Shown: positions 5,169 through 20,025 of the stretch, one piece after another
How the letters are laid out: each line of letters starts with the position of its first letter
Numbering within the stretch: position 1 is the stretch's first letter
Sequence record: OR545507.1
DNA length: 64,000 bases
Direction: 5' to 3' (one strand)
Notes under the pieces: model-generated
What the model was told of the DNA's origin: nothing
The model's input: the letters and a program-made list of their open reading frames with translations, nothing else
The model's database searches: none
Translations under genes and position numbers: made by a program

Positions 5169-5488
5169 AAAATTACCTCAACTAAAGCAAGAACTGTATT
5201 AAATTCAACTATACTTGTAATTCCTTGAAGGTACATGTACTTTGCTACTACATATTTCTGTACTAAATTATAATTATTAAATTCCTCAAAATTGTAATTT
5301 AGAACAAAATCTGTACTCAAAAATATCTTATGCATCTCTAATGCACTTTGATAATACGCGTACAACTCACGGATATCAATACTGGTTAAATTATATTGTT
5401 CATATCTATGATACGGGATGGCTTCAATTTCAATACTATAAAACCATTCTCTTAACTTATTAATATCAAATGTATTATTCAGCTTCAT
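5147..5488 (-). CDS. hypothetical protein
   Basis: ORF overlapping neighbours. Confidence 0.65.
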   Translation of the reverse strand: MKLNNTFDINKLREWFYSIEIEAIPYHRYEQYNLTSIDIRELYAYYQSALEMHKIFLSTDFVLNYNFEEFNNYNLVQKYVVAKYMYLQGITSIVEFNTVLALVEVILCSTCMI

Positions 5489-6041
5489 AACTCAATACCT
5501 CCATTAAACACTCATACACACCATCAATCGCATAAGCACAAAAATTGAAATTAATTTTGTGATTCTTGTGTAATGGACTATTGTGTACTGTACTCATTAT
5601 GACATTATAAAATAACAAACGCACTGGTACAAGCATTGAACCTTGGAAAAATTCTTCCTCTGATTTATATGTATTGTACTCTATTGTTTTGTTCGTTTCT
5701 TTATCATATGTTACCATTACTAATGGGGAATTTTTATTATACCATGCGTACTCTAAATCATTCTTTCCAATAACAGCACCAGGTGCGAAATCCAAAAGAC
5801 CAATAACACTACGGGCATTTGGTATATCTGGTGTATTGAATCGTTTATCAAAATGACTCGTGCACGCAATATATGTATTGTACTTCGATGGAATAATACC
5901 AATACATTTGTGGAAATGACGCTTGTGATATTTCTGGGCATTATATAAGGATGCAACAATACAAGCTAACTTTTGTCCCATAAGGATTGCATTAGCGTAG
6001 GTGTACTGAATTTCATTGCTGGTACGGTACTTCGAGGTCAT
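5475..6041 (-). CDS. hypothetical protein, FQxSLV-motif family
   Basis: motif EEEFFQGSMLV. Confidence 0.75.
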   Translation of the reverse strand: MTSKYRTSNEIQYTYANAILMGQKLACIVASLYNAQKYHKRHFHKCIGIIPSKYNTYIACTSHFDKRFNTPDIPNARSVIGLLDFAPGAVIGKNDLEYAWYNKNSPLVMVTYDKETNKTIEYNTYKSEEEFFQGSMLVPVRLLFYNVIMSTVHNSPLHKNHKINFNFCAYAIDGVYECLMEVLSYEAE

Positions 6042-6324
6042 AATATTTCCTTTGCCATATCATGGGCTTAAAATCAATAACAGCTTTCTGTATCTTTTTT
6101 AATAATAAGACATCATAACCACCCGTGTCAATCACTAATTGCTGTTGGAACAATTCTTCATCGGATAATGTATTGAAATCTACAAAATAATCTGTAACTA
6201 TCGAATCATTTAAATGTGCCATGTACCAACCTGAACTTCTTGAATAAATCAAATTCCACCCATCGTCATCATCTTCTAATTCAACATAAATCATATCTGG
6301 GGTATACATCATTTTATACTTCAT
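6013..6324 (-). CDS. hypothetical protein, FQxSLV-motif family
   Basis: motif DEELFQQQLVID. Confidence 0.75.
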   Translation of the reverse strand: MKYKMMYTPDMIYVELEDDDDGWNLIYSRSSGWYMAHLNDSIVTDYFVDFNTLSDEELFQQQLVIDTGGYDVLLLKKIQKAVIDFKPMIWQRKYYDLEVPYQQ

Positions 6325-6862
6325 AACTATATCCTTGCATTAATAAATCATAAACTACATGGACTAAATTTAATTGAATATAAAATTTTAAACCTTTAAT
6401 TAATGAATTCAAATGCATTGTACTGAATAACATTAGATACATCATCTCATGCGGTTTTGTGATTAATGATTTTTGAAATACGCCAGCTTCATCATAAGGG
6501 TCTATGAACTGAAATTTGTCTTCATCATAATTTGTATTGGAATGCTGATATATAAAATAATCATCATTGGTATTGTACCACAAATATCCTTCGAATCCTG
6601 TACTAACATCTTTGGTCAATGGGGATGCTGATACTGGATTTGAACTGATTAATGCACCTACATCAACAATCCCCGTTGTATCATATTCGATTTCAACATC
6701 AATATCAATGTATTTCCTTGCGATATCTGCGTTTATGGACAAATATAAACTACCACCTGTCCTCTGACTCAGGATTCCATCTATATGCGATATAGGATGG
6801 TTGTTATTGAGGATAAGCATTATTGTACTTATCTTGTGTGCTAATAACTCTATCTCATTCAT
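6314..6862 (-). CDS. hypothetical protein, FQxSLV-motif family
   Basis: motif EAGVFQKSLIT. Confidence 0.75.
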   Translation of the reverse strand: MNEIELLAHKISTIMLILNNNHPISHIDGILSQRTGGSLYLSINADIARKYIDIDVEIEYDTTGIVDVGALISSNPVSASPLTKDVSTGFEGYLWYNTNDDYFIYQHSNTNYDEDKFQFIDPYDEAGVFQKSLITKPHEMMYLMLFSTMHLNSLIKGLKFYIQLNLVHVVYDLLMQGYSYEV

Positions 6863-7210: not shown

Positions 7211-7603
7211 CTAATCTTTCCATTTAATAGGATACTCCTTTCCTTGTACTATATATGACAAAATCCATCCGTAATGAATAGGATGATTTTTGTCTGAATC
7301 AGGAATAAAATATAAAGCTGTACTTGGATTATGACTGAATAAATCTTTATTGTCAAATGTAAAATGTGATAATATAATTTTCCTTGCACTTGGACGAATA
7401 ACATTCTTAACACTGAACTCTGAACCTTTGTATTTCTCCGATAATTCAAATAATGCATCTGTAATTAAATCACTGATCTCTTGGATTACAAAATTCTGAT
7501 AAAATGCATTAATCTCTTTTAACTCTGTATACAATTCACTTCTGGTATTCAAAAGAAATATTACTTTTTTAAGATCCTGAACTATTTCTGGATTCATATT
7601 CAT
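7211..7603 (-). CDS. hypothetical protein
   Basis: ORF in packed run. Confidence 0.7.
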   Translation of the reverse strand: MNMNPEIVQDLKKVIFLLNTRSELYTELKEINAFYQNFVIQEISDLITDALFELSEKYKGSEFSVKNVIRPSARKIILSHFTFDNKDLFSHNPSTALYFIPDSDKNHPIHYGWILSYIVQGKEYPIKWKD

Positions 7604-7835
7604 TTATCTCATTCTGTAACTTAAGCATCAAAATTTGCATATTAATTTTTTGTAAAAGGTGCTTGATAAATTTCTGTGCCATTTCTTCTTGTTCTTTTGT
7701 ACCAAGATAAAATAACAGATTAAATTCTGATAATCGCAAAGAAAAATCTTCATCACCACCCTTTAAACAAAAATCCCTGTACTTTGTAGCGTACAAATAT
7801 TGGTTTACCTTTTTATAATACCCTGTGTTTTGCAT
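7569..7835 (-). CDS. GTxxQE-family small protein (outlier copy)
   Basis: LFYLGTKEQEE. Confidence 0.7.
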   Translation of the reverse strand: MQNTGYYKKVNQYLYATKYRDFCLKGGDEDFSLRLSEFNLLFYLGTKEQEEMAQKFIKHLLQKINMQILMLKLQNEINEYESRNSSGS

Positions 7836-8023
7836 ACTATCTCCGTTCGCAACGAATTTATATAATAATGAACAAATTGTTCTTGTGAACGTGTTCCAAG
7901 AAAAATAAACATATCAAACTCTGTTGTTTTTAAATTCAATGCATCTTTTGTAAAATTCCTGTTGAATTCCCTGTACTTTTGGGTCTTCCATTCTTGATTA
8001 ATTGTCTTGTATATCGATTTCAA
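7805..8023 (-). CDS. GTxxQE-family small protein (outlier copy)
   Basis: FIFLGTRSQEQ. Confidence 0.7.
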   Translation of the reverse strand: MKSIYKTINQEWKTQKYREFNRNFTKDALNLKTTEFDMFIFLGTRSQEQFVHYYINSLRTEIVCKTQGIIKR

Positions 8024-8324
8024 TGATTCTCCCTGATGTACCTTGTATTAGCTTATCATACATATCGAGCATCACTTTTTGAATACTAATTAGTACTGGC
8101 ATCGTGCAAATATCAATGTCGTATACTAAGCTGTACTGGAATAATTCATCTTCCTGCATTTGTACTAAATTAGGTAAAGGATAATTGTCTGCCTCTTCAT
8201 CCTGGTACTTGAAATGCATAACACCATCCTTTTTGTACAAAAGAATGTCAATATCACCTAACTCATCAGCATAACCAAAAATACATATACTCGATGTTTT
8301 TGCTATATTAAATTTCATCTCCAC
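7998..8324 (-). CDS. hypothetical protein, FQxSLV-motif family
   Basis: motif EDELFQYSLVYD. Confidence 0.75.
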   Translation of the reverse strand: MEMKFNIAKTSSICIFGYADELGDIDILLYKKDGVMHFKYQDEEADNYPLPNLVQMQEDELFQYSLVYDIDICTMPVLISIQKVMLDMYDKLIQGTSGRIIEIDIQDN

Positions 8325-8619: not shown

Positions 8620-9024
8620 CTAGTATTGCACTGTTCTAATGAAAGTACCTTTACTCATGGATTTAAGCTTATGAACCTCTTCCTGCATACCCTTAATTAA
8701 CCCTAAAGGTATAGGTAAATCATGTACTAAGCTGTACTGAAAGTATTCTTCTTCAGATAAAGTACTAACATCTGGAACGCCAATTTTAGTTATATAATCT
8801 TGATGTGTTGACCAATAAATTATATCTTCAGTACTATTGTACTCCCCATATACTGAACAATATTGATGAATATCTTTCCTGTACCCTTGAGCAATAAAGA
8901 ACTTATCTAATGCATTACCAGCATTAATAGAATTTACTTCGATTGTCACAGTACTTGAGCTTGTATAACTCTTAATATTATCAGTACTCTTAATACTCAA
9001 CGATGTGTTCTTCATAATCACCAT
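8620..9024 (-). CDS. hypothetical protein, FQxSLV-motif family
   Basis: motif EEEYFQYSLVHD. Confidence 0.75.
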   Translation of the reverse strand: MVIMKNTSLSIKSTDNIKSYTSSSTVTIEVNSINAGNALDKFFIAQGYRKDIHQYCSVYGEYNSTEDIIYWSTHQDYITKIGVPDVSTLSEEEYFQYSLVHDLPIPLGLIKGMQEEVHKLKSMSKGTFIRTVQY

Positions 9025-9334
9025 TAGGCTCCTGTTTAGATTCTTTCATTAGTACTATCATCTTATGTACTAATGGCATAGGGAACTCTAAATCCCATAC
9101 TAATGATTCCTGGAAGTATTCCTCTGGTGATAAAGTACTTAAATCTTTAATATCAACGTGCTTGTATATTTTATTTTCGTAATTAACAAATGATATATAT
9201 AAATCACTAACATAAGAATCATAGGTAATTGTGAATGGCTTACCCTTGTAATCCATTACATCTCTACATAGACTACTTTTGATATATGTATGTTCAAATG
9301 ATTTATATACCTTGAGTTGTATATTAGTTTTCAT
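8990..9334 (-). CDS. hypothetical protein, FQxSLV-motif family
   Basis: motif PEEYFQESLVWD; C-terminal part similar to 8620 gene. Confidence 0.75.
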   Translation of the reverse strand: MKTNIQLKVYKSFEHTYIKSSLCRDVMDYKGKPFTITYDSYVSDLYISFVNYENKIYKHVDIKDLSTLSPEEYFQESLVWDLEFPMPLVHKMIVLMKESKQEPNGDYEEHIVEY

Positions 9335-9599
9335 ATTTCTCTTTATTAGCTTGTTTGGTTTTATAGTGAATTAAATCTATTAATGTAATCAAGTACAACG
9401 TCAAATAGTACTCTTGTTGATCTGTACCTAATGATACAAAGAACTTGTGCTCATAGATTAAAACCTGTTTCTCTTCAAATGGACATTTAATCCTCTGTAT
9501 AGGCTTAAGTAAATGATAGTACTTATTAAATCTATGATACATTTCTAGTTCTGTCAGTACTTTCATATTAAACACATACTCCATTAGCTGTAGCATCAC
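9324..9599 (-). CDS. GTxxQE-family small protein
   Basis: SLGTDQQE. Confidence 0.75.
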   Translation of the reverse strand: MMLQLMEYVFNMKVLTELEMYHRFNKYYHLLKPIQRIKCPFEEKQVLIYEHKFFVSLGTDQQEYYLTLYLITLIDLIHYKTKQANKEKYEN

Positions 9600-9789
9600 G
9601 TAAAGCTGTCAAATACTTCTGTACGGCTTGCTCTTGCTTATTTGTACCTAAAAGTATATACATCCATAATTCACTGTAATGTACATCTTGTGTATAAGGG
9701 TCATTGTAACTTTTTGATAATATAGCATCAAATTCAGATGCATGAACCCTTGTGAACTTAAGAATATCTTGTTGTGTTATGATTCTCAT
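9568..9789 (-). CDS. GTxxQE-family small protein
   Basis: LLGTNKQE. Confidence 0.8.
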   Translation of the reverse strand: MRIITQQDILKFTRVHASEFDAILSKSYNDPYTQDVHYSELWMYILLGTNKQEQAVQKYLTALRDATANGVCV

Positions 9790-10001
9790 ATCTTTTCCTG
9801 TACAATCTGTATAAGAATACCTATGTGTGAATTAACAGTTCTCTCTTGATGCTGTGTTCCTAAGAGTGTCAGTACTATCATATCTGAACGCAAAAGATTT
9901 TTTTCAAGTTCACTTATATCAGTTCTTGAATCAAGTGCCATATATTTGTGATTATTCTTCCTGAATAGTGCCAAGTACTCTTGGTTTGATATTATCTTCA
10001 T
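9786..10001 (-). CDS. GTxxQE-family small protein
   Basis: LLGTQHQE. Confidence 0.8.
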   Translation of the reverse strand: MKIISNQEYLALFRKNNHKYMALDSRTDISELEKNLLRSDMIVLTLLGTQHQERTVNSHIGILIQIVQEKI

Positions 10002-10213
10002 AGTTTACTTTTAATTTCCATTAAAAGTGCTCTAATATGCTCATTGACAAATCGCTCTTGGGAATCTGTGTCTAGGGTGAGAAGCATTCTTAAATCGGAA
10101 CCTCTGATGGTATATTCTAAATCATTCTTTGATTCTCGCATAAGTTTCTGAAAGGATGAGAAGTGTAATCCCATGAGTTCAATGTATTCTGCTGTTCCTA
10201 GTGGTTTTGGCAT
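9998..10213 (-). CDS. GTxxQE-family small protein
   Basis: TLDTDSQE. Confidence 0.8.
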   Translation of the reverse strand: MPKPLGTAEYIELMGLHFSSFQKLMRESKNDLEYTIRGSDLRMLLTLDTDSQERFVNEHIRALLMEIKSKL

Positions 10214-10431
10214 TTTAGTTCAATAGCTCGTTTAAGTGTATTAATATAATCTTTAATGTCGTGTTCTTGATAGTTCGTTCCAAGGGTAGCTAGAACATAG
10301 ACTTCATTTCTCTTAATAATTTTATCCATATCTGGTATATCTGATGTGTTAATGACGAAGAGCTTCAAAAACAGTCCATTTATGATTGTTAGGTATTCTA
10401 CATCGGTAATGATTTTCATTTGCATTTGCAT
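10198..10431 (-). CDS. GTxxQE-family small protein
   Basis: TLGTNYQE. Confidence 0.8.
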   Translation of the reverse strand: MQMQMKIITDVEYLTIINGLFLKLFVINTSDIPDMDKIIKRNEVYVLATLGTNYQEHDIKDYINTLKRAIELKCQNH

Positions 10432-10637
10432 TTTCTCAGTACTGATTCTTTAAGTTCATTGATGTAGCACTCTACATATTCTTCTTGTAGGTTTGTTCCG
10501 ATATGTAACAGTACTCTTAAATCTGCTCTCAGTACTTCTTTGTCATCTTCATCTATATCAGACAGTGTTATGTTTAAGAATTTACTTGAACTCTCTATAA
10601 GTAATATTACTGAATCACCTTTGCTTAAAATTTTCAT
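10416..10637 (-). CDS. GTxxQE-family small protein
   Basis: HIGTNLQE. Confidence 0.8.
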   Translation of the reverse strand: MKILSKGDSVILLIESSSKFLNITLSDIDEDDKEVLRADLRVLLHIGTNLQEEYVECYINELKESVLRKCKCK

Positions 10638-10845
10638 AATCTCTTTTTGCTTTCCTCGCCAAAAGGTACATATACGATTCTTCGTATTGTGCTTGGTAGT
10701 TTGTGTTTAAGAGTCGAAACAACTTCTGTTCTGCTAGAACTAGTTGCTTATCTTCATAACAACGGTAGCGTATCAACTTTTTGTATTCGATGTTGATTAC
10801 ATCCATTACTATAAGCCCATGTTCATCATCTGTCAAGTGTTTCAT
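10615..10845 (-). CDS. GTxxQE-family small protein
   Basis: LLNTNYQA. Confidence 0.8.
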   Translation of the reverse strand: MKHLTDDEHGLIVMDVINIEYKKLIRYRCYEDKQLVLAEQKLFRLLNTNYQAQYEESYMYLLARKAKRDYENFKQR

Positions 10846-11084
10846 GCATTTTTTCTTTTTCTTATATGTTTAGTTAAAAGGTATATTAGTTTTCTGATGT
10901 ATTCTTCTTGATAGTTTGTTCCTAAGAGTGCAAGAAGTTTTGCTTCAACTAAAGCTAGTTGTCGTTCTTCGAATGTGTGTTCCAGTATGTACTTGGGGTT
11001 TGATTTTTTAGCGTAAGCACTATTAGTCTTCATTACAATCTTATGATATTCATTAGCTGTTAGGATTTTTAAATACTTGATCAT
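10842..11084 (-). CDS. GTxxQE-family small protein
   Basis: LLGTNYQE. Confidence 0.8.
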   Translation of the reverse strand: MIKYLKILTANEYHKIVMKTNSAYAKKSNPKYILEHTFEERQLALVEAKLLALLGTNYQEEYIRKLIYLLTKHIRKRKNA

Positions 11085-11304
11085 GTATCTTTTCCTTTAT
11101 AGAGAATTTAAGATATCGAAGCATACTTTCAATGTAATACTCTTGTCTGTCAGTGCCAAGAAAGTACATGAGTTGAATGTATAAAACTTCTGCACTCCTT
11201 TCCGCTGGAGACTTGTTTGTGTCGTTTGGAAGTTGATTTGTATGTTTTCTTGATTTAATTAGTCGTTCTTTTAACTCATCGTCTGTTAAGTATTTCATTT
11301 TCAT
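11053..11304 (-). CDS. GTxxQE-family small protein
   Basis: FLGTDRQE. Confidence 0.8.
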   Translation of the reverse strand: MKMKYLTDDELKERLIKSRKHTNQLPNDTNKSPAERSAEVLYIQLMYFLGTDRQEYYIESMLRYLKFSIKEKIHDQVFKNPNS

Positions 11305-11530
11305 TTACTTTTTCCTTAATAGTGATTTTAAGATATCTAATCATACGTGCAACATATTCCTCTTGTCTATCAGTTCCCAGAAGATATGGTAGTGATTGGA
11401 ATAATACTTCTGCACTCCTTTCTGCTGGGGTTTGGTTTAGGTCAATTGGACGTTTATTGGTATATCTCTTGGCACGAACTAATCTCTCGACGTATTCATT
11501 ATAGGTTAAGTATATCATTTCATTTTGCAT
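11276..11530 (-). CDS. GTxxQE-family small protein
   Basis: LLGTDRQE; close to 11053 and 11520 copies. Confidence 0.8.
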   Translation of the reverse strand: MQNEMIYLTYNEYVERLVRAKRYTNKRPIDLNQTPAERSAEVLFQSLPYLLGTDRQEEYVARMIRYLKITIKEKVNENEILNRR

Positions 11531-11750
11531 TTACTTTTTCCTTAATACTCATTATAAGATGTTCAATCATATTTTGAACCATAAATTCTTGTTTATCAGT
11601 TCCAAGAACGTATGGTAGCTTCTGAAACAATACATTTGCAGATACTTCAGATATTGATTGATTTGGAACGAACTTAAGAGTAATGTTTTTGGTTTTTAAC
11701 ATCTTCTCTTGAAATTCTTCATTCGTTAAGTATATCATTTCATTTTGCAT
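11520..11750 (-). CDS. GTxxQE-family small protein
   Basis: VLGTDKQE. Confidence 0.8.
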   Translation of the reverse strand: MQNEMIYLTNEEFQEKMLKTKNITLKFVPNQSISEVSANVLFQKLPYVLGTDKQEFMVQNMIEHLIMSIKEKVNAK

Positions 11751-11966
11751 TTACATTCTCTCATATATATTTTGGGTTAAAAGGTCAATCCAGATTTCCA
11801 CATATCGTTGTTGGTGTTGCGTCCCTAACAGTACACCCAACTTAGCTTCACACTCTAATAACAATCTGGTTTTGTATGGTAGACTTTGGAATCCTATAGT
11901 AGCATCTAATTTGGTAATTGCATAGTTGATTCGGATGAATCTTTCTTGCAATGTGATGTTGTTCAT
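11751..11966 (-). CDS. GTxxQE-family small protein
   Basis: LLGTQHQQ. Confidence 0.8.
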   Translation of the reverse strand: MNNITLQERFIRINYAITKLDATIGFQSLPYKTRLLLECEAKLGVLLGTQHQQRYVEIWIDLLTQNIYERM

Positions 11967-12253
11967 TTCTTAGTACACCTCAGTGGTTGGGTCATTTGAT
12001 AAAAGTACAGCTTACCTTTGATTTCCAGTAGTAACTCCGCGATTAAGCGATTTACTTCTGTATCTTGATAGTTTGTTCCTAAGAATACACCCATCTTTAA
12101 CTCACGCATCATAATCATTTTCTTACTGTGTTGAATTTCTGGGTTGTGATAGATTGTATTACGTTTGTGCGTAATTTTTGTCATACGCTCGGTATATTCA
12201 TCTTTACTTAAATTGATCATTTGCATGTTCATCAACCTCACATTTATTTTCAA
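11963..12253 (-). CDS. GTxxQE-family small protein
   Basis: FLGTNYQD. Confidence 0.8.
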   Translation of the reverse strand: MKINVRLMNMQMINLSKDEYTERMTKITHKRNTIYHNPEIQHSKKMIMMRELKMGVFLGTNYQDTEVNRLIAELLLEIKGKLYFYQMTQPLRCTKK

Positions 12254-12255
12254 TA

Positions 12256-12522
12256 CTATTCTTTAGTTTGTAGATATAGTTTTCTTCCAATGTATCTCTT
12301 AAGTGCGATTATGTATTCATCTACATAATACTCCTGATAGTTTGTTCCTATGAATGCACCCACCTTTAACTCAAGTTTCATAATCATCTTATTTCCGTGT
12401 TTAATGACTTCTCCGTGATGGATTTCATTAAGTCCAGGTGCAATTTTCACCAGGCGTTCTTTATATTTTGCTTGAGATAATTTAATCATTTTCATGTTAA
12501 TTACCCTTACATTTATTTTCAA
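12256..12522 (-). CDS. GTxxQE-family small protein
   Basis: FIGTNYQE. Confidence 0.8.
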   Translation of the reverse strand: MKINVRVINMKMIKLSQAKYKERLVKIAPGLNEIHHGEVIKHGNKMIMKLELKVGAFIGTNYQEYYVDEYIIALKRYIGRKLYLQTKE

Positions 12523-12727
12523 TACTATTCATGAGTTCTATAAGATAGTTTTCTACCTTACCTTCCTGATAGTTAGTCCCTAGGAAGTTGCACAACACGG
12601 CTTCTATGATTTTGATTTTCCTGATATCAGGCTTCAATCTTTTGTTATTGAATATTTGAATCCTTATATCTCTGGATGCATTTAAACGTTTTTGATATTC
12701 ATGGTAAGTTAAATGAATCATTTTCAT
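12497..12727 (-). CDS. GTxxQE-family small protein
   Basis: FLGTNYQE. Confidence 0.8.
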   Translation of the reverse strand: MKMIHLTYHEYQKRLNASRDIRIQIFNNKRLKPDIRKIKIIEAVLCNFLGTNYQEGKVENYLIELMNSIENKCKGN

Positions 12728-12942
12728 TTACGTTTAACCTCTCGCTGGAGGGCATCAATTAACATCAGTACAGCATTCTCTTGATAGTTTGTTCCTAAGA
12801 CTGAAAGCATCTTTATCTCATTTACTAAAATCAACTTCTTTGAGGGTTCAATAATGTGACTATCATAAACGGCCTTACGTGCTGGATAAGTTTTCGCCAG
12901 TATAACATAAAATTCGTCTTTACTTAAATTAATCATTTGCAT
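12724..12942 (-). CDS. GTxxQE-family small protein
   Basis: VLGTNYQE. Confidence 0.8.
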   Translation of the reverse strand: MQMINLSKDEFYVILAKTYPARKAVYDSHIIEPSKKLILVNEIKMLSVLGTNYQENAVLMLIDALQREVKRK

Positions 12943-13151
12943 TTACTTTTAACCTCTTTCTGTAGAGCGTCAATCCATAGATCTACATACATTTGTTGAT
13001 AGTTTGTGCCTAAGAGTGCACCTACATAGAGTTCAGTTACTAGTGCGTGCTTAAGGTTAGCTTGGATGCTCTTATCGCTTGATATCATTCTCCTTCTGCT
13101 TCCACATGTTTTCAGGAGTCTGATGTATTCAAAGCCTTGTAAATTTCTCAT
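12933..13151 (-). CDS. GTxxQE-family small protein
   Basis: LLGTNYQQ. Confidence 0.8.
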   Translation of the reverse strand: MRNLQGFEYIRLLKTCGSRRRMISSDKSIQANLKHALVTELYVGALLGTNYQQMYVDLWIDALQKEVKSKCK

Positions 13152-13363
13152 ATTTTGGATACCACCTTGTTACGTAAGGAACTTAATAATACGTCAGTGT
13201 AGATGTTTTGATAGTTTGTCCCTACGAATACACCCAACTTCATTTCAGCTATTATAACACATTTGTCCTCTTGTGCAATAGATTTGTTTAACACAATACT
13301 ATACACTTTTGATTTGATAGTTTGTAACCTCCAATGATACTGATACTCATTAAGGATTATCAT
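13148..13363 (-). CDS. GTxxQE-family small protein
   Basis: FVGTNYQN. Confidence 0.8.
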   Translation of the reverse strand: MIILNEYQYHWRLQTIKSKVYSIVLNKSIAQEDKCVIIAEMKLGVFVGTNYQNIYTDVLLSSLRNKVVSKI

Positions 13364-13598
13364 TCTCTTTCCTCCAGATTTCGGTTCTCATGTGTTGGCA
13401 GTGTGCATCAATATATTGCTCTATCGATCTGGCGATTGCTGTTTTATCAGTGCCTGTCATCAGTACAAGCATCTCGGCCTCACAGTGAAGTAAACGCATG
13501 ATATCATAGGGTAATATTTCAGATACCGTGTCATAGTGTTTCTGTGCCAGTGTCTGCAATAGTTTACAATACATTTTGTGATTTAGTCTTTGTCGCAT
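13350..13598 (-). CDS. GTxxQE-family small protein (divergent)
   Basis: EAEMLVLMTGTDK...IEQYIDA; motif has an insertion. Confidence 0.7.
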   Translation of the reverse strand: MRQRLNHKMYCKLLQTLAQKHYDTVSEILPYDIMRLLHCEAEMLVLMTGTDKTAIARSIEQYIDAHCQHMRTEIWRKENDNP

Positions 13599-13834
13599 TG
13601 TTTCTTCCATTCTCTTCTGGCTTGGCGGGTTTTATCTGATATTTCGTTTCTCAATGCAGAGATATATCGTAGAGTGAACAGTTCTTGATAGTTAGTCCCT
13701 ATGAATTTATTAAGATATACATCAGCGTTGACGATATCAGCTTCACGGGAATTATAAAGTTTATTGTTAGTGCGAAGGGTGTTTAGAAGAGAGAAGAGGG
13801 CAGTCTGATACTCAGTGCTTGATAAAGTTTTCAT
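13583..13834 (-). CDS. GTxxQE-family small protein
   Basis: FIGTNYQE. Confidence 0.8.
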   Translation of the reverse strand: MKTLSSTEYQTALFSLLNTLRTNNKLYNSREADIVNADVYLNKFIGTNYQELFTLRYISALRNEISDKTRQARREWKKQCDKD

Positions 13835-14069
13835 ATTTTTCCACAATTCGTTCATTTAGTTTTATCTGTATAAGATCCATTAGTTGTTCAAGATAATCGG
13901 TACAATATTTCTCTTGATATTGGGTTCCCACAAAGTACAGCAACCATAGCTCATGAACTTTAACTTTCATCTCGTTCCATGAAAGTGCATCGTCATCGTA
14001 GATTACTCTTGCTTCTGGGGTGAGCTTTCGAATTCTAAGTGAATATTCATCGTCCGTCAAGTGTTTCAT
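13812..14069 (-). CDS. GTxxQE-family small protein
   Basis: FVGTQYQE. Confidence 0.8.
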   Translation of the reverse strand: MKHLTDDEYSLRIRKLTPEARVIYDDDALSWNEMKVKVHELWLLYFVGTQYQEKYCTDYLEQLMDLIQIKLNERIVEKYENFIKH

Positions 14070-14224
14070 TTACATTTATCCCTTATTAGATTTGTGAGTG
14101 CAACTATGTGTTCATGGATATAAAAATTTTGATGAGAAGTTCCAAGAAAGTACAGCATCCATCCCTCACTCTGCTCGACTTCTAGTTTAGTATCGAGTTG
14201 GTCAGATATGTTAATGAAAACCAT
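14066..14224 (-). CDS. GTxxQE-family small protein (52 aa, not in ORF track)
   Basis: hand translation MVFINISDQLDTKLEVEQSEGWMLYFLGTSHQNFYIHEHIVALTNLIRDKCK; ATGA overlap. Confidence 0.75.
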   Translation of the reverse strand: MVFINISDQLDTKLEVEQSEGWMLYFLGTSHQNFYIHEHIVALTNLIRDKCK

Positions 14225-14448
14225 TAGTTCTTTTCCTTTCTTTCTATTTGTTTCATAAGAACATCGATATACTCACCCGCAAACCTATTCTGATACTGCG
14301 TCCCCATGAATTCCAACATCCATACTTCAGCAACCTTTTCTTCAATTTCAGTCCATTGTAAGTACATCATAGTGAAGTAAATGGTGTTCTCTTTTTTTCT
14401 GGCACTCTTAGCACGGGCCTCGTATTCAAAGTTATTAATGATGTTCAT
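14224..14448 (-). CDS. GTxxQE-family small protein
   Basis: FMGTQYQN. Confidence 0.8.
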   Translation of the reverse strand: MNIINNFEYEARAKSARKKENTIYFTMMYLQWTEIEEKVAEVWMLEFMGTQYQNRFAGEYIDVLMKQIERKEKN

Positions 14449-14662
14449 TACATTTGTCCATAATGTAATTCTTGAGTGCAACTATGTGTGCAATAACATA
14501 CTCTTCCTGGAAGTTCGTCCCCAGTACAGCCAACATGCGTACATCGGTGGTGTTTATCTTGTGTTCCAATCGAGTTAAACCTTTTATTTGTAAAAGGGTA
14601 TCGTATTTGTTTAATGCATCAATGATAATTCTCATCTTCTCAATATTACTTAAATGTTTCAT
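14435..14662 (-). CDS. GTxxQE-family small protein
   Basis: VLGTNFQE. Confidence 0.8.
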   Translation of the reverse strand: MKHLSNIEKMRIIIDALNKYDTLLQIKGLTRLEHKINTTDVRMLAVLGTNFQEEYVIAHIVALKNYIMDKCNEHH

Positions 14663-14871
14663 AGTTTACTCTTAATGTAGTTCTGAAGTTCAATTAAGTA
14701 TTTCCCTACATAATACTCCTGAAAGTCTGTATCCAAAAATGCACCCAAAAGTAAATCCTTCTCCATTGCCCTTGATAAGTTAAGGTCTGCATTTGAAAGG
14801 TATATAAGTAATATTTCAGTCTGGACAGAATTAAAACGTTTCTTATATTCTTCAGGTGTTAATATAATCAT
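14659..14871 (-). CDS. GTxxQE-family small protein
   Basis: FLDTDFQE. Confidence 0.8.
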   Translation of the reverse strand: MIILTPEEYKKRFNSVQTEILLIYLSNADLNLSRAMEKDLLLGAFLDTDFQEYYVGKYLIELQNYIKSKL

Positions 14872-15083
14872 AATTTGCTCCTGATGTATTTCTCAAGAGA
14901 TGACAAATACTTTTCCTCATAATACTCCTGATAGTCTGTTCCCAAGAATGCACCCATAAGTATTTCATTTTCCAATACCTCGGCTAAGTTTAAATCAGAC
15001 GTCTCTTCGTATATTATGAGGATTTCAAGTTGTCTGGCAGCGATGCGTTCAGTATATTGATATGAGTTTTCTATAATAATCAT
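14868..15083 (-). CDS. GTxxQE-family small protein
   Basis: FLGTDYQE. Confidence 0.8.
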   Translation of the reverse strand: MIIIENSYQYTERIAARQLEILIIYEETSDLNLAEVLENEILMGAFLGTDYQEYYEEKYLSSLEKYIRSKL

Positions 15084-15289
15084 ATTTTACTCTTAATATC
15101 TTCTATTAAAAATCGAATCCATTCTTCAACATAATCTTCCTGATGGTTTGTGTTCAGTACAGCCAACATGCGGATCTCTGCTCTTGCAACTTCAATTTCA
15201 GTTTTAGGCAGGTCTTTGCTGATATCCACCATTAAGTCCATGTATTTCAAGATAAGACCGTATGATTGGGTTCGTGTTATAGTTTTCAT
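15080..15289 (-). CDS. GTxxQE-family small protein
   Basis: VLNTNHQE. Confidence 0.8.
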   Translation of the reverse strand: MKTITRTQSYGLILKYMDLMVDISKDLPKTEIEVARAEIRMLAVLNTNHQEDYVEEWIRFLIEDIKSKI

Positions 15290-15486
15290 TGTTTCCTCGT
15301 GGACAATATTTTATTTTTCAATGTATCCATATATTGCCACACCCATCTACCCTGATAGTTTGTTCCCAATGTAATCAAAAGGTATAACTCCATTCGTTCT
15401 ACGTGTGTGTCTGTGTTGTAAATCTTTACGTAGTTTTTACGTAACAGTGATTGATATTCTTCTTTATTTAAAATACGCATTTTCAT
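15286..15486 (-). CDS. GTxxQE-family small protein
   Basis: TLGTNYQG. Confidence 0.8.
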   Translation of the reverse strand: MKMRILNKEEYQSLLRKNYVKIYNTDTHVERMELYLLITLGTNYQGRWVWQYMDTLKNKILSTRKQ

Positions 15487-15680
15487 AGTTTACTCGTTAT
15501 ATCTTCAATTAAATACCAAATCCAATCGTTGACATACCTTTCCTGAAAGTTAGTTCCAATGAATAGTGCCATAATTAATTCACGCTTATAGGCAATACCA
15601 CGGTCATGGGACTTATACATTATCATAGCCATGTTATTGATAAGTCTTTCGTGGTGCTGTTCTTTAGTTAAAATACGCAT
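15483..15680 (-). CDS. GTxxQE-family small protein (first of array)
   Basis: FIGTNFQE; AAGGGAG RBS before MRILTKE. Confidence 0.8.
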   Translation of the reverse strand: MRILTKEQHHERLINNMAMIMYKSHDRGIAYKRELIMALFIGTNFQERYVNDWIWYLIEDITSKL

Positions 15681-15710
15681 AGGGACTCCCTTAAAATTAA
15701 TATCAATCAT

Positions 15711-15739
15711 ATTTTATACGATTCATATAAAAAGTCAAT
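15711..15739 (-). promoter_or_regulatory. sigma70-type promoter for GTxxQE array
   Basis: TTGACT-N16-TAAAAT on minus strand. Confidence 0.55.
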
Positions 15740-15929
15740 AACATTTTATTCGTAATACCCCTTTATCGAAGTCGCTAAGGTTACCCGCCCTTTAGCCCCC
15801 TACGCATTTTGCCATAGTCCAATCCCTTTTATTTCAAAAAAGTCAAGGGATTACCTATGCATTTTTTTAACGCATAATTTTAAAAACGCCTTGACTTTTT
15901 TCTGAATCAGTACTAGATCCCTTTACGCA

Positions 15930-16139
15930 TTAATCCTTCGTTACGCTAACGATTATCTGTGTATCCCCGTAGTCCTGCCATACTTCCACGCCATCGGTCG
16001 CCCTGGTTAGTCGTGCTGTCATCTGCTTAATGGTCTTAGGCTTTAGTGGAACCTGTTGCAGTACTGTACGCATAGCATCATTGACGTTATCATGTACGCC
16101 TGCAATAGTACCTAGAACGCTGTATACTGTATAGAACAT
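15930..16139 (-). CDS. hypothetical early protein
   Basis: ORF with GGAGGG RBS. Confidence 0.7.
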   Translation of the reverse strand: MFYTVYSVLGTIAGVHDNVNDAMRTVLQQVPLKPKTIKQMTARLTRATDGVEVWQDYGDTQIIVSVTKD

Positions 16140-16162
16140 ATGTATGCCCTCCTGATATAGTT

Positions 16163-16183
16163 AAGGCCGCTACAAGGCGGCCT
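16163..16183. terminator. GC hairpin
   Basis: AGGCCGC-N-GCGGCCT stem. Confidence 0.5.
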
Positions 16184-16207
16184 ATGATGTTTGGTGATGT
16201 GTAACGC

Positions 16208-16609
16208 TTACAGTCCTAAGATAGTGCGTGCTTCGTTACGTTCCGTACACAGCTGCATGATGTGAGCAAGTAAGTCCTTGCTAATGTATCCGGTGTTCAT
16301 AGCTTCACGAATAGATACATCATACGCACCGAACCCCGTGCGAACGATACGCACATCATTCAGGTTAGTATTATAGATACCGCCGAGATCAACGGCTTCG
16401 AATACTACATCAACAGAATATTCATTGTTGCCATCGTGGAAGTTTTCCAGTGCAATAGTATTGGATACCGCCCAACGTTTGCAGTTTCCAATGATGCGGC
16501 ACTGTTCCGGTTGGATAGTACCATTACTTACAGCGTACTCCAGTGCATCTTTACCAAAAGTCCGAGCCAGTACTAAAACGTCAGCGAAGGAATTGATTGA
16601 GAAGGTCAT
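16208..16609 (-). CDS. hypothetical early protein
   Basis: ORF behind promoter-stem-loop; start MTFSINS. Confidence 0.75.
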   Translation of the reverse strand: MTFSINSFADVLVLARTFGKDALEYAVSNGTIQPEQCRIIGNCKRWAVSNTIALENFHDGNNEYSVDVVFEAVDLGGIYNTNLNDVRIVRTGFGAYDVSIREAMNTGYISKDLLAHIMQLCTERNEARTILGL

Positions 16610-16698
16610 GATAAAACTCCTTAATTTAGGAGGGAGAACCATTTCCCCCTCTCTATGTAAAACATTATACTTGATTCTAAGTACTATGCAAGTACTTT

Positions 16699-17031
16699 TT
16701 ACATTTTAATACCTGGATTCAGGTAGCGGTGAGATCCATATTCTGGATCGGTTTCGGTCCAGTACTGTAAATCGATAGTACCTTTCGCGTTAATCTTGTC
16801 TACCAGCTTATTCATCTTAGTGTATACTACGTCAGCATCGATGCGTTTAAAGCCAGTAGCTTTAGTGAAGTAGTAGTGATTTGCTTCACTATCATTAAGG
16901 ATATACCGAGCACCGTTTGCAGTCTGTGCGATAATGATTGAGTATTCTACTTCCCGATCCAGACCGTCGATGAATACAGATGAAACATTGGTACGGATGA
17001 AAGCTTTAACGATAGCGATTGAAGTACTCAT
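16699..17031 (-). CDS. hypothetical early protein
   Basis: ORF with own promoter and AGGAG RBS. Confidence 0.75.
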   Translation of the reverse strand: MSTSIAIVKAFIRTNVSSVFIDGLDREVEYSIIIAQTANGARYILNDSEANHYYFTKATGFKRIDADVVYTKMNKLVDKINAKGTIDLQYWTETDPEYGSHRYLNPGIKM

Positions 17032-17181
17032 TTTGAATCTCCTAACTTTGTGGGCCGTCGCACCATTGCCGCCCTACGAGATACATTATTGCAGTACTGA
17101 TATACTTTGTCAATACTTTTTTTATTAATAGTTTTCACCCCACCAGCAGATAGTTACTCACCGTTATTAACTATATATTTT

Positions 17182-17262
17182 AGATACACTCCTGCACCCA
17201 GTGGGCTAGTTTTTGTCTATGCGTATATAATAGCAAAGGGACTGACCGGAGTCAATCCCTTT
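17182..17262 (-). repeat. promoter-CCCANNGGGTGC element A (with terminator/promoter hairpin)
   Basis: GGGATTGAC-TCCG-GTCAGTCCC; TTGACT-N17-TATTAT; then GCCCACTGGGTGCAGGAGTGTATCT; no ORF. Confidence 0.8.
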
Positions 17263-17277
17263 TTTTATTCTTTTTTG

Positions 17278-17478
17278 TTAGATGATTCTCCAATCTTCTA
17301 CGATCATGGTAAGATAACGGACCATCGATTCAAGTGATTCGAATTCCCGATAGTCTGCCGCTCCACCAGCGGTACAAGTACAGCCGATTAAACCATTTTG
17401 TAATTCCTTAATCTGTACATCGATAAGGTTGGCTTTAGCTTCTTTCAGTACTTCAACCAGGGCGATAGCGATAGACAT
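17278..17478 (-). CDS. hypothetical early protein
   Basis: ORF behind promoter-stem-loop. Confidence 0.7.
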   Translation of the reverse strand: MSIAIALVEVLKEAKANLIDVQIKELQNGLIGCTCTAGGAADYREFESLESMVRYLTMIVEDWRII

Positions 17479-17567
17479 AATGTTTTACTCCAAACTATTG
17501 ACGGGAGAACTATTCCCCCGCTCTATGTAAAACATTATACATTACTGGTTAGTACTGTCAAATAGTT

Positions 17568-17825
17568 TTATGAAATATCTTCGATGTAGTCGGCCCATTT
17601 CATTTTTTCAGTACTGTCAATGGCTACCGGATTATTTGGATCAAACCATTCACCATTCCCGCAATACATACCCACGGCAACGGTTTTATATCCATCCTGT
17701 GCAGTACTCCACGACATAGCACGATAGATATGGCCTTTAACTGGTTGCAATACTGGTAATGTTTTATGGTCTTCTACGTAGGCCATAGCTTGAGGATTTA
17801 CCCGATATTGTGTGAACTGTTCCAT
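17568..17825 (-). CDS. hypothetical early protein
   Basis: ORF with own promoter and RBS. Confidence 0.7.
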   Translation of the reverse strand: MEQFTQYRVNPQAMAYVEDHKTLPVLQPVKGHIYRAMSWSTAQDGYKTVAVGMYCGNGEWFDPNNPVAIDSTEKMKWADYIEDIS

Positions 17826-17901
17826 TATGTTTCCCCTTGTAGTTAGTAAAGTTATTACATCAGTACTATCAAGCTATGTCAATAGTACTGAAATAAAACT
17901 T

Positions 17902-18126
17902 TTAGATTAGATTATTGATGCCGTTGATGGTAGACTCGCTTTCTTCTTTCTCCCATTGGCGGTAGTACTTCCATGCTTCATGATATGTGGCGATTAGTTC
18001 ATCTTTTTGATCCTGAGTACATGCCAGTACTGAATCACGGTGAGCGGTTTTATAGATAGAATCGAATGATTTCTTCTCTTCTGCCAGGTTAGCTACTTCC
18101 CGCATCAGTTCATCAAAGTTAGCCAT
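17902..18126 (-). CDS. hypothetical early protein
   Basis: ORF with GGAG RBS. Confidence 0.7.
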   Translation of the reverse strand: MANFDELMREVANLAEEKKSFDSIYKTAHRDSVLACTQDQKDELIATYHEAWKYYRQWEKEESESTINGINNLI

Positions 18127-18193
18127 TTTATTACTCCTTTTAGTGGGGGAGGATATCTCCCCCTATGCAAAACATTATACTTTGTTTTAGTTA

Positions 18194-18457
18194 TTATGCA
18201 AGTACTTTTTTCATATAAAGATTATATTCTACACCGCCGTAACCTTCTACGATGATATGTTTTGCGTTATCACGTTTGCACATAGTGAAACCGTTGTTGA
18301 TGTGTTCTGCATTTTCCAGGGCGACATCACCGATAGCGGCACATACGGCACTAATAACAGTATTCCGCAAAGTACTGGTATCATTAGCGGTCATAGTAGT
18401 TTGCAGTACTACGTTGTCGTATACGTGTGCATTGATAGTGATTTCGATAGTGTTCAT
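18194..18457 (-). CDS. hypothetical early protein
   Basis: ORF behind promoter-stem-loop. Confidence 0.7.
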   Translation of the reverse strand: MNTIEITINAHVYDNVVLQTTMTANDTSTLRNTVISAVCAAIGDVALENAEHINNGFTMCKRDNAKHIIVEGYGGVEYNLYMKKVLA

Positions 18458-18543
18458 GGTGTATCTCCTGGACTGGCGGGAGAACTATTCCCCCGCTCTA
18501 TGTAAAACATTATACGTTAATCTAACTACAATGCAAGTACTTT

Positions 18544-18735
18544 TTAAATTTTATTTCCGATATAGTCCGGTCTATTCTTTTCGGTCATACGCTTTGCTAA
18601 TGTTTGCATATGGCTTATTGCGTTTAATGTGTCTTCCTCCAGGGATGAATCAACATAATCAGGATCATTCTTCACCTTGCAATGATTATGATAGCGTAGT
18701 ACTGCCAGTACTTTTTTAACTTCTTCTACTGTCAT
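18544..18735 (-). CDS. hypothetical early protein
   Basis: ORF, ATGA overlap. Confidence 0.65.
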   Translation of the reverse strand: MTVEEVKKVLAVLRYHNHCKVKNDPDYVDSSLEEDTLNAISHMQTLAKRMTEKNRPDYIGNKI

Positions 18736-19004
18736 AATAAGTACCCCACTTCGTTAGCTTTCAGGTTAGTATCAATCATCAGTGGATTTTTGTAGTTCAC
18801 AAAACGATTAGTTTTCTCGATAGCGAATCCCATATAATCCAGCTTACTAACAGTACATTCATTCTTAAAAACTTCTTTCGCTGCATCGATGGCTGATTGC
18901 ATGGATAACCGACCATCTAAATTAATGTTTCCAAATGATCCACCAGCAGAAGTAGGATTACCGTTCATATCTTTAATGATCATAGTAGCGGAGTAGCTGG
19001 ACAT
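18732..19004 (-). CDS. hypothetical early protein
   Basis: ORF behind promoter-stem-loop. Confidence 0.7.
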   Translation of the reverse strand: MSSYSATMIIKDMNGNPTSAGGSFGNINLDGRLSMQSAIDAAKEVFKNECTVSKLDYMGFAIEKTNRFVNYKNPLMIDTNLKANEVGYLL

Positions 19005-19091
19005 AATTTTGTTTCCTTTTAGTATCGGGGAGAACTATTCTCCCCTTGATGTAAACTATTATACAGTACTGATATACTTTGTCAAATACTT

Positions 19092-20012: not shown

Positions 20013-20025
20013 TTTTTAATCTTTT

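Follow-up and report, generated by a model that had tools for sequence, protein, structure and literature searches.

An old tandem expansion of small four-helix PHROG 4148 proteins beside the terminal repeat of Escherichia phage Sharanji

What is the role, and what the history, of 29 small related genes standing in one unbroken series in a phage genome? Escherichia phage Sharanji is a giant phage of E. coli (genus Asteriusvirus), and the window analysed here (64,000 nucleotides, sequence record OR545507.1) covers its first 64 kb. The ORF listing and an HMM scan both place 29 paralogues of 52-90 aa on the minus strand at 9324-15710, and two diverged stray copies at 7569-8023 (7805-8023, E = 4e-11; 7569-7835, E = 2e-6). 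Run over all 977 stop-to-stop segments of the whole 64 kb in six frames, the HMM returned nothing further below 1e-3 bar one short out-of-frame fragment. All ten copies tested match phrog_4148, a PHROGs family of unknown function, with E values of 1e-18 to 1e-26 for array copies and of 7e-9 and 1.6e-3 for the outliers. The count of 29 tandem paralogues and two outliers in the preliminary description, which was made from the letters alone, is borne out by the ORF listing and the HMM scan, with the PHROGs matches as independent support for the family. That description called 14066-14224 missing from the ORF track, whereas the public record annotates it as gp044; the copies absent from the public Sharanji record are 10615-10845 and 7805-8023.

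Numbered from the right-hand end, all on the minus strand and with HMM E values unless stated otherwise, the series opens with copy 1 (15483-15680, 65 aa, 2.5e-21; phrog_4148 1.2e-19), followed by copies 2 (15286-15486, 66 aa, 1.2e-20) and 3 (15080-15289, 69 aa, 3.5e-23), both in 9/9 relatives, copy 4, the most acidic (net -8; 14868-15083, 71 aa, 1.6e-20; phrog_4148 8.8e-19), and copy 5 (14659-14871, 70 aa, 1.2e-22), which shares 50% identity with copy 4 and, like copy 6 (14435-14662, 75 aa, 8.2e-24), is absent from 1/9 relatives. Copy 7 (14224-14448, 74 aa, 4.3e-23) is absent from 4/9 relatives and copy 8 (14066-14224, 52 aa, 6e-18) from 6/9, the latter having a short N-terminus and a profile match covering its C-terminal two thirds only. 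Copies 9 (13812-14069, 85 aa, 1.1e-26; 58-99% identity) and 11 (13350-13598, 82 aa, 4.6e-20; divergent, with a short insertion past the motif) are found in 9/9 relatives and flank copy 10 (13583-13855, 90 aa, 1.8e-20; phrog_4148 1.7e-18). Next come copies 12 (13148-13363, 71 aa, 4.6e-24), 13 (12933-13151, 72 aa, 8.5e-26), 14 (12724-12942, 72 aa; phrog_4148 3e-21) and 15 (12497-12727, 76 aa, 4e-27), then copy 16 (12256-12495, 79 aa, 3.8e-27; phrog_4148 1.3e-26; absent from 3/9 relatives), which shares 49% identity and a DNA repeat (D5) with copy 17 (11963-12226, 87 aa, 6.8e-26). Copy 18 (11751-11966, 71 aa, 1.8e-21) precedes copy 19 (11520-11750, 76 aa, 1.1e-21; absent from 5/9 relatives), with copy 20 (11276-11530, 84 aa, 6.5e-24; phrog_4148 8.7e-18) being 55% identical to copy 19 and 51% to copy 21 (11053-11304, 83 aa, 5.4e-26; DNA repeat D6). 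Copy 22 (10842-11084, 80 aa, 4.9e-21) is the most basic (net +9), and copy 23 (10615-10845, 76 aa, 2e-19) is annotated in G17 but not in the Sharanji record; a promoter-like 11/12 match in copy 23, at 10836-10808, consists of coding sequence. The array continues with copies 24 (10416-10637, 73 aa, 2.7e-23; phrog_4148 6.3e-23), 25 (10198-10425, 75 aa, 4e-25; two copies at this position in 7/9 relatives), 26 (9998-10213, 71 aa, 9.2e-21), 27 (9786-10001, 71 aa, 2.3e-22) and 28 (9568-9789, 73 aa, 1.5e-22; phrog_4148 5.9e-22), the last having the highest per-copy pN/pS (0.86, followed by copy 6 at 0.71), and ends with copy 29 (9324-9584, 86 aa, 6.2e-23), which overlaps an unrelated gene at 8990-9334. 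Outlier copy 30 (7805-8023, 72 aa, TTG start, 4.2e-11; phrog_4148 7.2e-9) is present in 9/9 relatives and annotated in neither Sharanji nor G17, whilst the divergent outlier copy 31 (7569-7835, 88 aa, 2.3e-6; phrog_4148 1.6e-3) has only the helix 3-turn-helix 4 core in common with the family, its AF2 model (pLDDT 86.9) showing helices at residues 4-25, 28-42 and 49-86.

The 29 + 2 copies are read as one long polycistronic unit, with genes overlapping by 1-44 nt at 25/28 junctions, ATGA overlaps at 12/28, and a Shine-Dalgarno (SD) core upstream of 13/29 genes compared with 8% at random. At 11/28 junctions the ribosome-binding site of the next gene lies within the tail of the preceding one, and the conservation of the short basic C-terminal tail, with its Lys retained in 82% of array copies, may partly serve that site rather than the protein. 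The candidate promoter previously placed at 15711 was found as a sigma70-type match on the minus strand at 15738-15711 (TTGACT, 16-nt spacer, TAAAAT), within a 67-bp gap separating the array from the direct terminal repeat (DTR), whose inner edge is 40 bp away. Promoter, SD and start codon are conserved in 7/9 relatives, the -10 element being TAAAAT or TATTAT; the array's own promoter scores 10/12 only. The most likely start codon of the first gene is the ATG at 15680, which is preceded 5 nt upstream by GGGAG (GGAG core) and yields an N-terminus typical of the family, and not the ATG at 15710 used in the public record, which JP4 and Ecwhy_1 do not preserve. The DTR (20,668 bp, 15778-36445) is the array's neighbour and lies outside it, with the two copies in the G17 record, which have 0 mismatches to each other, mapping to these positions, a PhageTerm repeat length of the same value (PMC11895373), and the vB_Ec-M-J annotation placing the terminal repeat in the same way. 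The window's 11 perfect sigma70 promoters all lie inside the DTR on the minus (coding) strand. Array and terminal repeat are separated by an additional gene in PBECO4 and BF17, which, like the 10/12 promoter score, weighs against the early reading put forward below.

The common G-T-x-x-Q-E core noticed at the outset is real, with the motif Thr present in 31/31 copies. Of the 29 copies in the array itself, 96% have the Gln, 86% the Gly, 72% the post-motif Glu and 96% a Leu further downstream. The AF2 model of copy 14 (pLDDT 97.2, pTM 0.83) has four helices (residues 8-17, 19-27, 33-47 and 54-71) and a beta-bridge joining residues 4 and 51, with the invariant Thr placed in this bridge directly ahead of helix 4; in the model G-T-x-x-Q-E forms a turn and helix cap, and so is a structural motif. 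The N-terminal half had been called hypervariable, which is true of helix 2 and the loop after it, the most variable part, but not of the first ~11 residues, which make up the beta-bridge and the beginning of helix 1 and show conservation (Met 85%, Leu 75%, Glu 71%, Tyr 60%). Conservation among paralogues runs opposite to variability among orthologues (Spearman -0.66, p 6e-11), with 4.5% of ortholog pairs differing in the turn, the least variable element, compared with 13-14% in helices 1, 2 and 4. As the residues conserved family-wide make up the hydrophobic helix face and the Gly-Thr turn with its helix cap, they build the fold, and residues outside this set diverge strongly from copy to copy, with net charges from -8 to +9 and pI values of 4.3-9.9. 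Model confidence, correlation and pI range together uphold the early picture of a constant scaffold with variable surfaces.

No characterised family was matched by sequence or fold in Pfam, NCBIfam, PHROGs, PDB or BFVD, an orphan status that is a weak negative as regards the fold because fold searches have difficulty in matching small helical proteins. None of the 62 proteins of the phAPEC6 virion proteome maps to gp459c-gp497c, the array being gp467c-gp489c, and the searchable literature yielded expression data for no Asteriusvirus. We tentatively regard the array as an ancient PHROG 4148 expansion that supplies an early, non-virion panel of putative small binders, a reading that comes near to an even chance without reaching it. 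Host RNA polymerase would transcribe the array early, either from the promoter of the array itself or by transcripts running on out of the promoter-dense upstream repeat, with the shared orientation of array and repeat genes fitting transcription that tracks DNA entry from the right-hand end; the label "early" derives from promoter type and position only. Each paralogue would serve as a small binding module, with a surface of its own that contacts a different macromolecule of the host (or of a competitor), the paralogues jointly forming a host-takeover or counter-defence panel, and new members would arise by unequal crossing-over between neighbours, followed by fixation and divergence. The only pointers to the putative defence-inhibitor or decoy role suggested in the preliminary description are circumstantial: early-type position and promoter, absence from the virion proteome and diversified surfaces.

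Alternatively, the paralogues may be small nucleic-acid-binding or regulatory proteins, such as modulators of transcription or translation or proteins that coat DNA, that differ in sequence target or timing. This is unlikely, albeit the strongest of the alternatives: 15/31 copies are basic (pI above 8), the conserved tail Lys would suit such a role, and the domains are predicted to be small and all-helical, however ten copies are acidic, to net -8, the tail conservation is partly explicable by the ribosome-binding-site overlap, and neither a helix-turn-helix or other nucleic-acid-binding fold in PDB and BFVD nor a nucleic-acid-binding family in Pfam and NCBIfam was matched. Less likely again are antidotes or exclusion factors, each countering a different toxin or nuclease of the phage itself or of a competitor, as might be supposed by analogy from tandem, small, helical genes with diversified surfaces and copies retained one by one. 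Cognate toxin genes are however neither interleaved with nor adjacent to the array, the neighbouring genes having no recognisable domains, the fold search returned no colicin-type or other immunity protein, and no PADLOC model was matched by more than one member.

The history of the array bears on the remaining alternatives. Adjacent copies share a mean identity of 30.5% compared with 25.0% overall, a value reached in 0/10,000 permutations, and the best pairs (49-55%) are those already named as most alike. This adjacency signal, together with the DNA repeats that do persist between copies at 11494/11714 (47 nt, 87%), 12063/12332 (226 nt, 74%) and 11081/11301 (220 nt, 70%), supports the proposed serial tandem duplication. 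Among the relatives, which carry 25-32 copies per phage, 20/31 copies occur in all nine and eleven positions are lost in at least one phage. Co-assembly of the paralogues into a hetero-oligomer in the infected cell, their diversity reflecting assembly positions rather than targets, is doubtful to a slightly greater degree than the antidotes. Tight translational coupling within one operon would favour making the proteins together and in similar amounts, copies of opposite charge could be drawn into pairs, and 20 copies are co-retained in every relative, but the eleven dispensable positions, the 25 copies of 121Q, the ~5 dispersed members of RaK2 (behind a similar promoter-rich block) and the failure to detect the proteins in virions speak against it.

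The preliminary description spoke of a gene accordion, and a currently active one, with recent amplification, ongoing selection and rapid gain and loss, is a shade more doubtful still. Copy number varies, DNA-level repeats remain between neighbours, and the youngest duplicates (copies 16, 19, 20 and 21, plus the additional copy at position 25) are among the polymorphic positions, but paralogues are only ~25% identical on average (maximum 55%), their own colinear orthologues are far more alike (47-100%), 20/31 copies are universally retained, and no alignment column has an excess of nonsynonymous change (maximum 0.91), so that no arms-race signature is evident at the pooled level, a point that tells against the panel reading too. 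Taken strictly, the accordion is largely refuted by paralogue identity, colinearity and retention. Array dN/dS is ~0.37 (0.35-0.39 in eight genome comparisons), about twice that of neighbouring genes (repeat genes 0.13-0.21; downstream genes 0.17-0.36), which could be merely relaxed constraint, with nonsynonymous against synonymous changes of 0/18 at the invariant Thr, 2/13 at Gly and 2/13 at Leu65; purifying selection is clear. Functionless, slowly decaying filler tolerated by a very large genome is the least credible reading, for although the raised dN/dS, the truncation and frequent absence of copy 8, and a single break that splits copy 27 of BF17 into two reading-frame segments would fit it, dN/dS is well under 1 in every comparison, the Thr is unchanged, ten genomes show every reading frame but one at full length, the model has very high confidence, and the family has relatives in other genera.

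Across the genus most copies have been kept one by one, with moderate purifying selection acting on them, and the array is an old tandem expansion, specific to this lineage, of an orphan four-helix family of ~8 kDa, for which the panel of putative binders remains our preferred role. Family members elsewhere include at least 11 on one metagenomic contig. The antidote reading is modelled on the tandem orphan immunity genes of bacterial polymorphic-toxin loci, whilst the nucleic-acid-binding reading draws on jumbo phage G, which has ~35 copies of a small zinc-ribbon protein, these being proposed transcription factors or DNA-binding proteins (PMC7824862).

The 29 consecutive minus-strand ORFs at 9324-15710 make up an old multigene family, most of it fixed and its youngest members showing some turnover, rather than a fast gene accordion. 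A profile HMM made from these ORFs was run over the whole window, as 977 stop-to-stop segments in six frames. It recovers the 29 array copies and two outliers, at 7805-8023 (E = 4e-11) and 7569-7835 (E = 2e-6), plus a single short fragment that is out of frame, with nothing else below 1e-3. The copy count of the preliminary description is thus borne out by both the ORF listing and the scan, as is its shared G-T-x-x-Q-E core, the Thr of which is present in 31 of 31 copies, with the Gln, Gly, and a downstream Leu found in 96%, 86%, and 96% of the 29 array copies respectively. The N-terminal half, described as hypervariable, is not uniformly so, its first ~11 residues being conserved, and the copy at 14066-14224, noted as missing from the ORF track, is present in the public annotation; the copies absent from the public Sharanji record are 10615-10845, which is annotated in vB_EcoM_G17, and 7805-8023. 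Escherichia phage Sharanji (OR545507.1, same coordinates) and vB_EcoM_G17 both show 100% identity over the array region, which matches 36 phage records; these come without exception from Asteriusvirus jumbo phages (PBECO4/121Q group) of E. coli or Salmonella, with every gene under the matches annotated as “hypothetical protein”. The array, some 1.8% of a 350-kb genome, has stood in public records since 2013 under that name only. All ten copies tested match phrog_4148 across nearly the whole 74-position profile (E values of 8.7e-18 to 1.3e-26 for eight array copies, and 7.2e-9 and 1.6e-3 for the two outliers), and on these profile matches the array proteins are assigned to PHROG 4148, a phage cluster of unknown function. 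The PHROG entry covers the same family, but is a product of sequence clustering alone and is silent on the tandem array, its position, fold, and selection.

Both terminal-repeat copies are present in the G17 record; they agree without a mismatch over 20,668 bp and map to 15778-36445 of the window, with the published PhageTerm repeat length for Sharanji also being 20,668 bp (PMC11895373). This places the array 67 bp beyond the edge of the repeat and hence at one copy per genome. The same layout is seen in the vB_Ec-M-J record, in which the repeat is annotated at 1-21525 and the first array gene at 21624. Our first thought, that the array lies inside the terminal repeat, as the Sharanji record starts at coordinate 1, was disproved by comparing both G17 repeat copies; the start of the public Sharanji record is not a physical genome end. 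The right repeat boundary (36445) falls near a sign change in GC skew between 36 and 38 kb.

The window contains 35 near-consensus sigma70 promoters, compared with 4.7 ± 2.5 in shuffled sequences. Of the 29 on the minus strand, 19 fall in the repeat, as do all 11 perfect promoters, likewise on the minus strand and consensus matches only. Almost all small genes of the repeat have a promoter of their own, often with a terminator. The array is preceded by one sigma70-type site (10/12 consensus match; 15738-15711, minus strand), in keeping with the promoter previously placed at 15711, with the first gene most likely starting at 15680, judging by its sequence context, and not at 15710. Seven of nine relatives retain this promoter, the Shine-Dalgarno site (GGGAG) that follows it, and the 15680 ATG. 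In PBECO4 (10445-10810 of its locus) and BF17 (10580-10945 of its locus), an extra 366-nt gene, absent from Sharanji, lies between array and repeat and displaces the array promoter context. An 11/12 promoter-like site inside copy 23 (10615-10845) is made up of conserved N-terminus codons, recurs at copy 9 (13812-14069), and was not counted as a promoter.

No strong terminator is predicted within the array, and ATGA overlaps occur at 12 of its 28 junctions. Shine-Dalgarno cores precede 13 array genes, compared with 8% at random positions, and 11 of these cores lie inside the C-terminal codons of the previous gene, such that the “basic tail” may owe some of its conservation to the translation of the gene that follows. 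Tightly packed minus-strand genes run on downstream of the array to the window start. The repeat-array junction (15700-15935, minus strand) carries repeated TTGACTTTTT elements and its RNA folds unusually well (-59.8 kcal/mol, z -4.35), and could be a terminator, packaging site, or regulatory element. A 28-nt GC-rich hairpin, whose stem includes a -35 box (TTGAC) and which precedes a TATTAT resembling a -10 box, occurs in three identical minus-strand copies in the terminal repeat (17227-17262, 19979-20014, and 23248-23283), with three minus-strand variants near 60 kb (59674-59694, 61088-61108, and 62370-62390) and similar hairpins at 5639, 8285, and 10161 of a 24-kb locus of Klebsiella phage RaK2. 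The G17 record annotates the 28-nt hairpins as terminators, and, judged by sequence, they resemble cassettes between early genes that unite a terminator with a promoter. Even without any function for the array, the exact position of the terminal repeat in the window, the corrected start of the first gene, and the two unannotated copies are usable results.

AlphaFold2 modelling of copy 14 (12724-12942) from an alignment of the 31 paralogues gives a confident small helical fold (pLDDT 97.2, pTM 0.83), with helices at residues 8-17, 19-27, 33-47, and 54-71, and an isolated beta-bridge from residue 4 to residue 51, the invariant Thr. In this model the G-T-x-x-Q-E motif thus forms a turn that fastens the N-terminus to the last helix at its start and also caps this helix, and is read as structural, rather than catalytic. 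The conserved positions of helix 4 (58, 62, 65, 69, and 72) are spaced by three or four residues, as expected of a buried face, which this helical periodicity suggests. The model of the weaker outlier, copy 31 (7569-7835; pLDDT 86.9), has only the helix 3-turn-helix 4 core in common, and its last helix is much longer. When the HMM was used to align 247 paralogues and orthologues taken from nine genomes, columns with strong paralogue conservation proved to be those with least variation between orthologues (Spearman -0.66, p = 6e-11), with only 4.5% of ortholog pairs differing in the turn, compared with 13-14% in helices 1, 2, and 4. The copies span pI values of 4.3-9.9 and net charges between -8 and +9. 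These values support the earlier proposal of a constant scaffold with variable surfaces.

Based on the promoter motifs and position, host RNA polymerase would transcribe the array early. The array products would form a panel of small binding proteins with different targets in host takeover or counter-defence. All genes from the right-hand repeat through the array point one way, an orientation that would be compatible with genes being transcribed as the DNA enters from that end, in the manner of T7. We tentatively propose, at well below an even chance, a combinatorial early-infection panel of ~30 orphan mini-fold variants, each neutralising or redirecting a different host defence or housekeeping factor; such an array would be for phages what terminal multigene families are for poxviruses and African swine fever virus, and would offer a new small binder scaffold diversified by nature. 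If the products are early binders of distinct targets, the locus would supply about thirty natural probes for studying E. coli physiology or defence, all sharing a single very small, confidently predicted fold.

Foldseek comparison of the two models with the PDB gave no significant match, the top match being a segment of the PnuC membrane transporter (E = 0.8), and that of one model with BFVD gave same-family phage proteins or insignificant helical fragments only, negatives to be read with the insensitivity of fold searches for 70-residue helical proteins. A sequence-profile search of the PDB returned nothing below E = 1.5, and Pfam, NCBIfam, and PADLOC scans of all members returned single-member chance matches only. 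Pfam, NCBIfam, PADLOC, and the PDB therefore link the family to no characterised one, and, with Foldseek searches of the PDB and BFVD included, no consistent match to a described anti-defence or defence-associated family was found. Nucleic-acid-binding proteins are an unlikely alternative; the basic copies, with pI values up to 9.9, are compatible with such a role, but neither model matched a helix-turn-helix or other small DNA-binding fold in the Foldseek search of the PDB. That the copies act as antidotes or exclusion factors is more doubtful, with the predicted small helical fold being of a compatible kind, no four-helix nuclease-toxin immunity proteins among the Foldseek matches, and toxin and nuclease domains absent, by Pfam, from the ten downstream and ten upstream neighbours of the array. 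Co-assembly of the paralogues with one another, to which the tight overlap of their genes and the opposite charges among copies would lend themselves, is given a slimmer chance again. In phAPEC6, in which the array corresponds to gp467c-gp489c, the published ESI-MS/MS list of 62 virion proteins includes none within gp459c-gp497c, although a 4.7-kDa protein was detected elsewhere; on these data, from one phage only, the array products are not structural and were not detected as virion or internal head proteins.

The only Pfam match among the twenty neighbours is a weak one in the repeat, where the gene at 20026-20610 (minus strand) matches Pkinase with E = 0.0024, below the Pfam cut-off; its product, WNN14351.1, is described in the Sharanji paper as a second kinase of unknown function. 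Directly downstream of the array is a second small paralogous family (7998-8324, 8620-9024, and 8990-9334, minus strand), whose three proteins of 106-134 aa have a common C-terminal acidic/aromatic motif, none with a Pfam match. Further downstream, 1292-6862 holds a run of ~170-200-aa genes without a Pfam match, and a 40.8-kb metagenomic contig carries about 20 similar-sized, weakly paralogous tandem genes (10243-20246), with one weak link to 4662-5168 of the window. BLASTP paralogy is weak among the ~170-200-aa genes downstream of the array, and by sequence these and the contig genes may be another expanded family.

Serial tandem duplication is supported by the array sequences. Mean pairwise paralogue identity is 25.0% (maximum 55%), while neighbouring copies average 30.5%, higher than in any of 10,000 permutations, and the closest pairs are copies 19/20 (55%), 20/21 (51%), 4/5 (14868-15083 and 14659-14871; 50%), and 16/17 (49%). 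The top pairs are those picked out in the preliminary description, and the short DNA repeats it noted do persist between the closest neighbours. The array is nevertheless colinear across all relatives, with orthologues 47-100% identical, compared with ~25% between paralogues. The copy-number comparison gives totals from 25 (121Q) to 32 (slurp01) among nine relatives, one genome each, with 20 of 31 copies present in all nine, 11 positions polymorphic (copies 5, 6, 7, 8, 14, 16, 19, 20, 21, 22, and 27 each absent from at least one relative), a second copy at position 25 (10198-10425) in seven of nine, and one array copy split once in BF17. Identity across the array is a mosaic between otherwise near-identical genomes, with Sharanji and slurp01 94-100% identical at 27 positions and only 47-80% identical at four, which suggests that allelic blocks are exchanged by recombination. 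In K3L-type accordions the arrayed copies are recent and near-identical, and are gained and lost over a few passages. The poxvirus K3L accordion resembles the array in tandem duplication by unequal recombination in a large DNA virus, and in that some copy-number polymorphism exists among the array relatives; however, the array copies are far from near-identical, and each has conserved orthologues. An active accordion, as first suggested for this array, is accordingly one of the two weakest rivals on these data, and very unlikely.

The Nei-Gojobori dN/dS of the array between Sharanji and eight relatives is 0.35-0.39, compared with 0.13-0.21 for nine terminal-repeat genes and 0.17-0.36 for eight non-family downstream genes in the same calculation, comparisons which share a phylogeny. 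A per-column count robust to shared ancestry, in which minimum changes within each ortholog group were pooled over 29 groups, gives an overall ratio of 0.40 with no column above 0.91, and nonsynonymous versus synonymous changes of 0/18 at the invariant Thr, 2/13 at the Gly, and 2/13 at Leu65. These values mark the array genes as protein-coding and subject to purifying selection, which is about two times more relaxed than on their neighbours, with no sign of positive selection at the pooled level of 29 ortholog groups. Functionless filler, the other weakest rival, fits this relaxation but hardly the constraint, and is the least credible reading.

An exhaustive profile search through 1.84 billion representative proteins found 93 clusters only. 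Outside the genus, one of these clusters, RaK2_00362 of Klebsiella phage RaK2 and its relatives, has the same core followed by a ~50-aa extension. The 24-kb RaK2 locus holds five members, arranged as pair, single, and pair, downstream of a gene block with individual sigma70 promoters, as in Sharanji; one member (11710-11868 of the locus) is unannotated. The 40.8-kb metagenomic contig has 11 members in the 20 kb read, and copy number thus runs from ~5 to at least 11 to ~30 in different lineages. One 1771-aa match with ten matched stretches (P0153) is a eukaryotic repeat protein and was rejected as spurious. The array is found in no complete RefSeq E. coli genome; many family proteins in databases are labelled “Escherichia coli”, on ~350-kb contigs that are probably phage DNA in draft assemblies.

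Neither a description of the array family nor Asteriusvirus expression data were found in the searchable literature. Large families of small paralogues have been reported in other jumbo phages, with about 35 zinc-ribbon proteins in Bacillus phage G (PMC7824862), about 10% paralogues in RaK2 (PMC3622015), and 22 paralogous ORFs in CBB (PMC5259590), the latter two papers mentioning paralogues in general terms only. These expansions resemble the array in being sets of small jumbo-phage paralogues with no known role, and none of the papers describes the array family, the fold of which, in contrast to the zinc ribbons, is all-helical without zinc ligands, with its copies forming one uninterrupted tandem array.

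The terminal-redundancy module of SPO1 and the pre-early genes of T5 likewise encode many small proteins of unknown fold from host-type promoters at a genome end with a long direct repeat. The array shares with them small proteins, the terminal-repeat end, and host-type promoters, the latter as consensus matches only (10/12 for the array, with 11 perfect promoters upstream). Whilst the SPO1 and T5 modules lie inside the repeat and are made of unrelated genes, the array ends at 15710, outside the repeat, and consists of 29 copies of a single family; neither its sequence nor its fold showed a relationship to these modules. In the Bcl-2-like helical family of poxviruses and the MGF families of African swine fever virus, terminal paralogues each bind a different host factor. 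The likeness of the array to these families is in mode of working only, comprising a position near genome ends, low identity, a conserved small fold, and diversified surfaces, whereas the viruses, hosts, and sequences are unrelated, no homology is claimed or found, and binding by the phage family is putative. Should the proposed panel of early binders prove true, the series of increasing copy number would be a clear bacterial-virus case of the multigene-family strategy of large eukaryotic DNA viruses.
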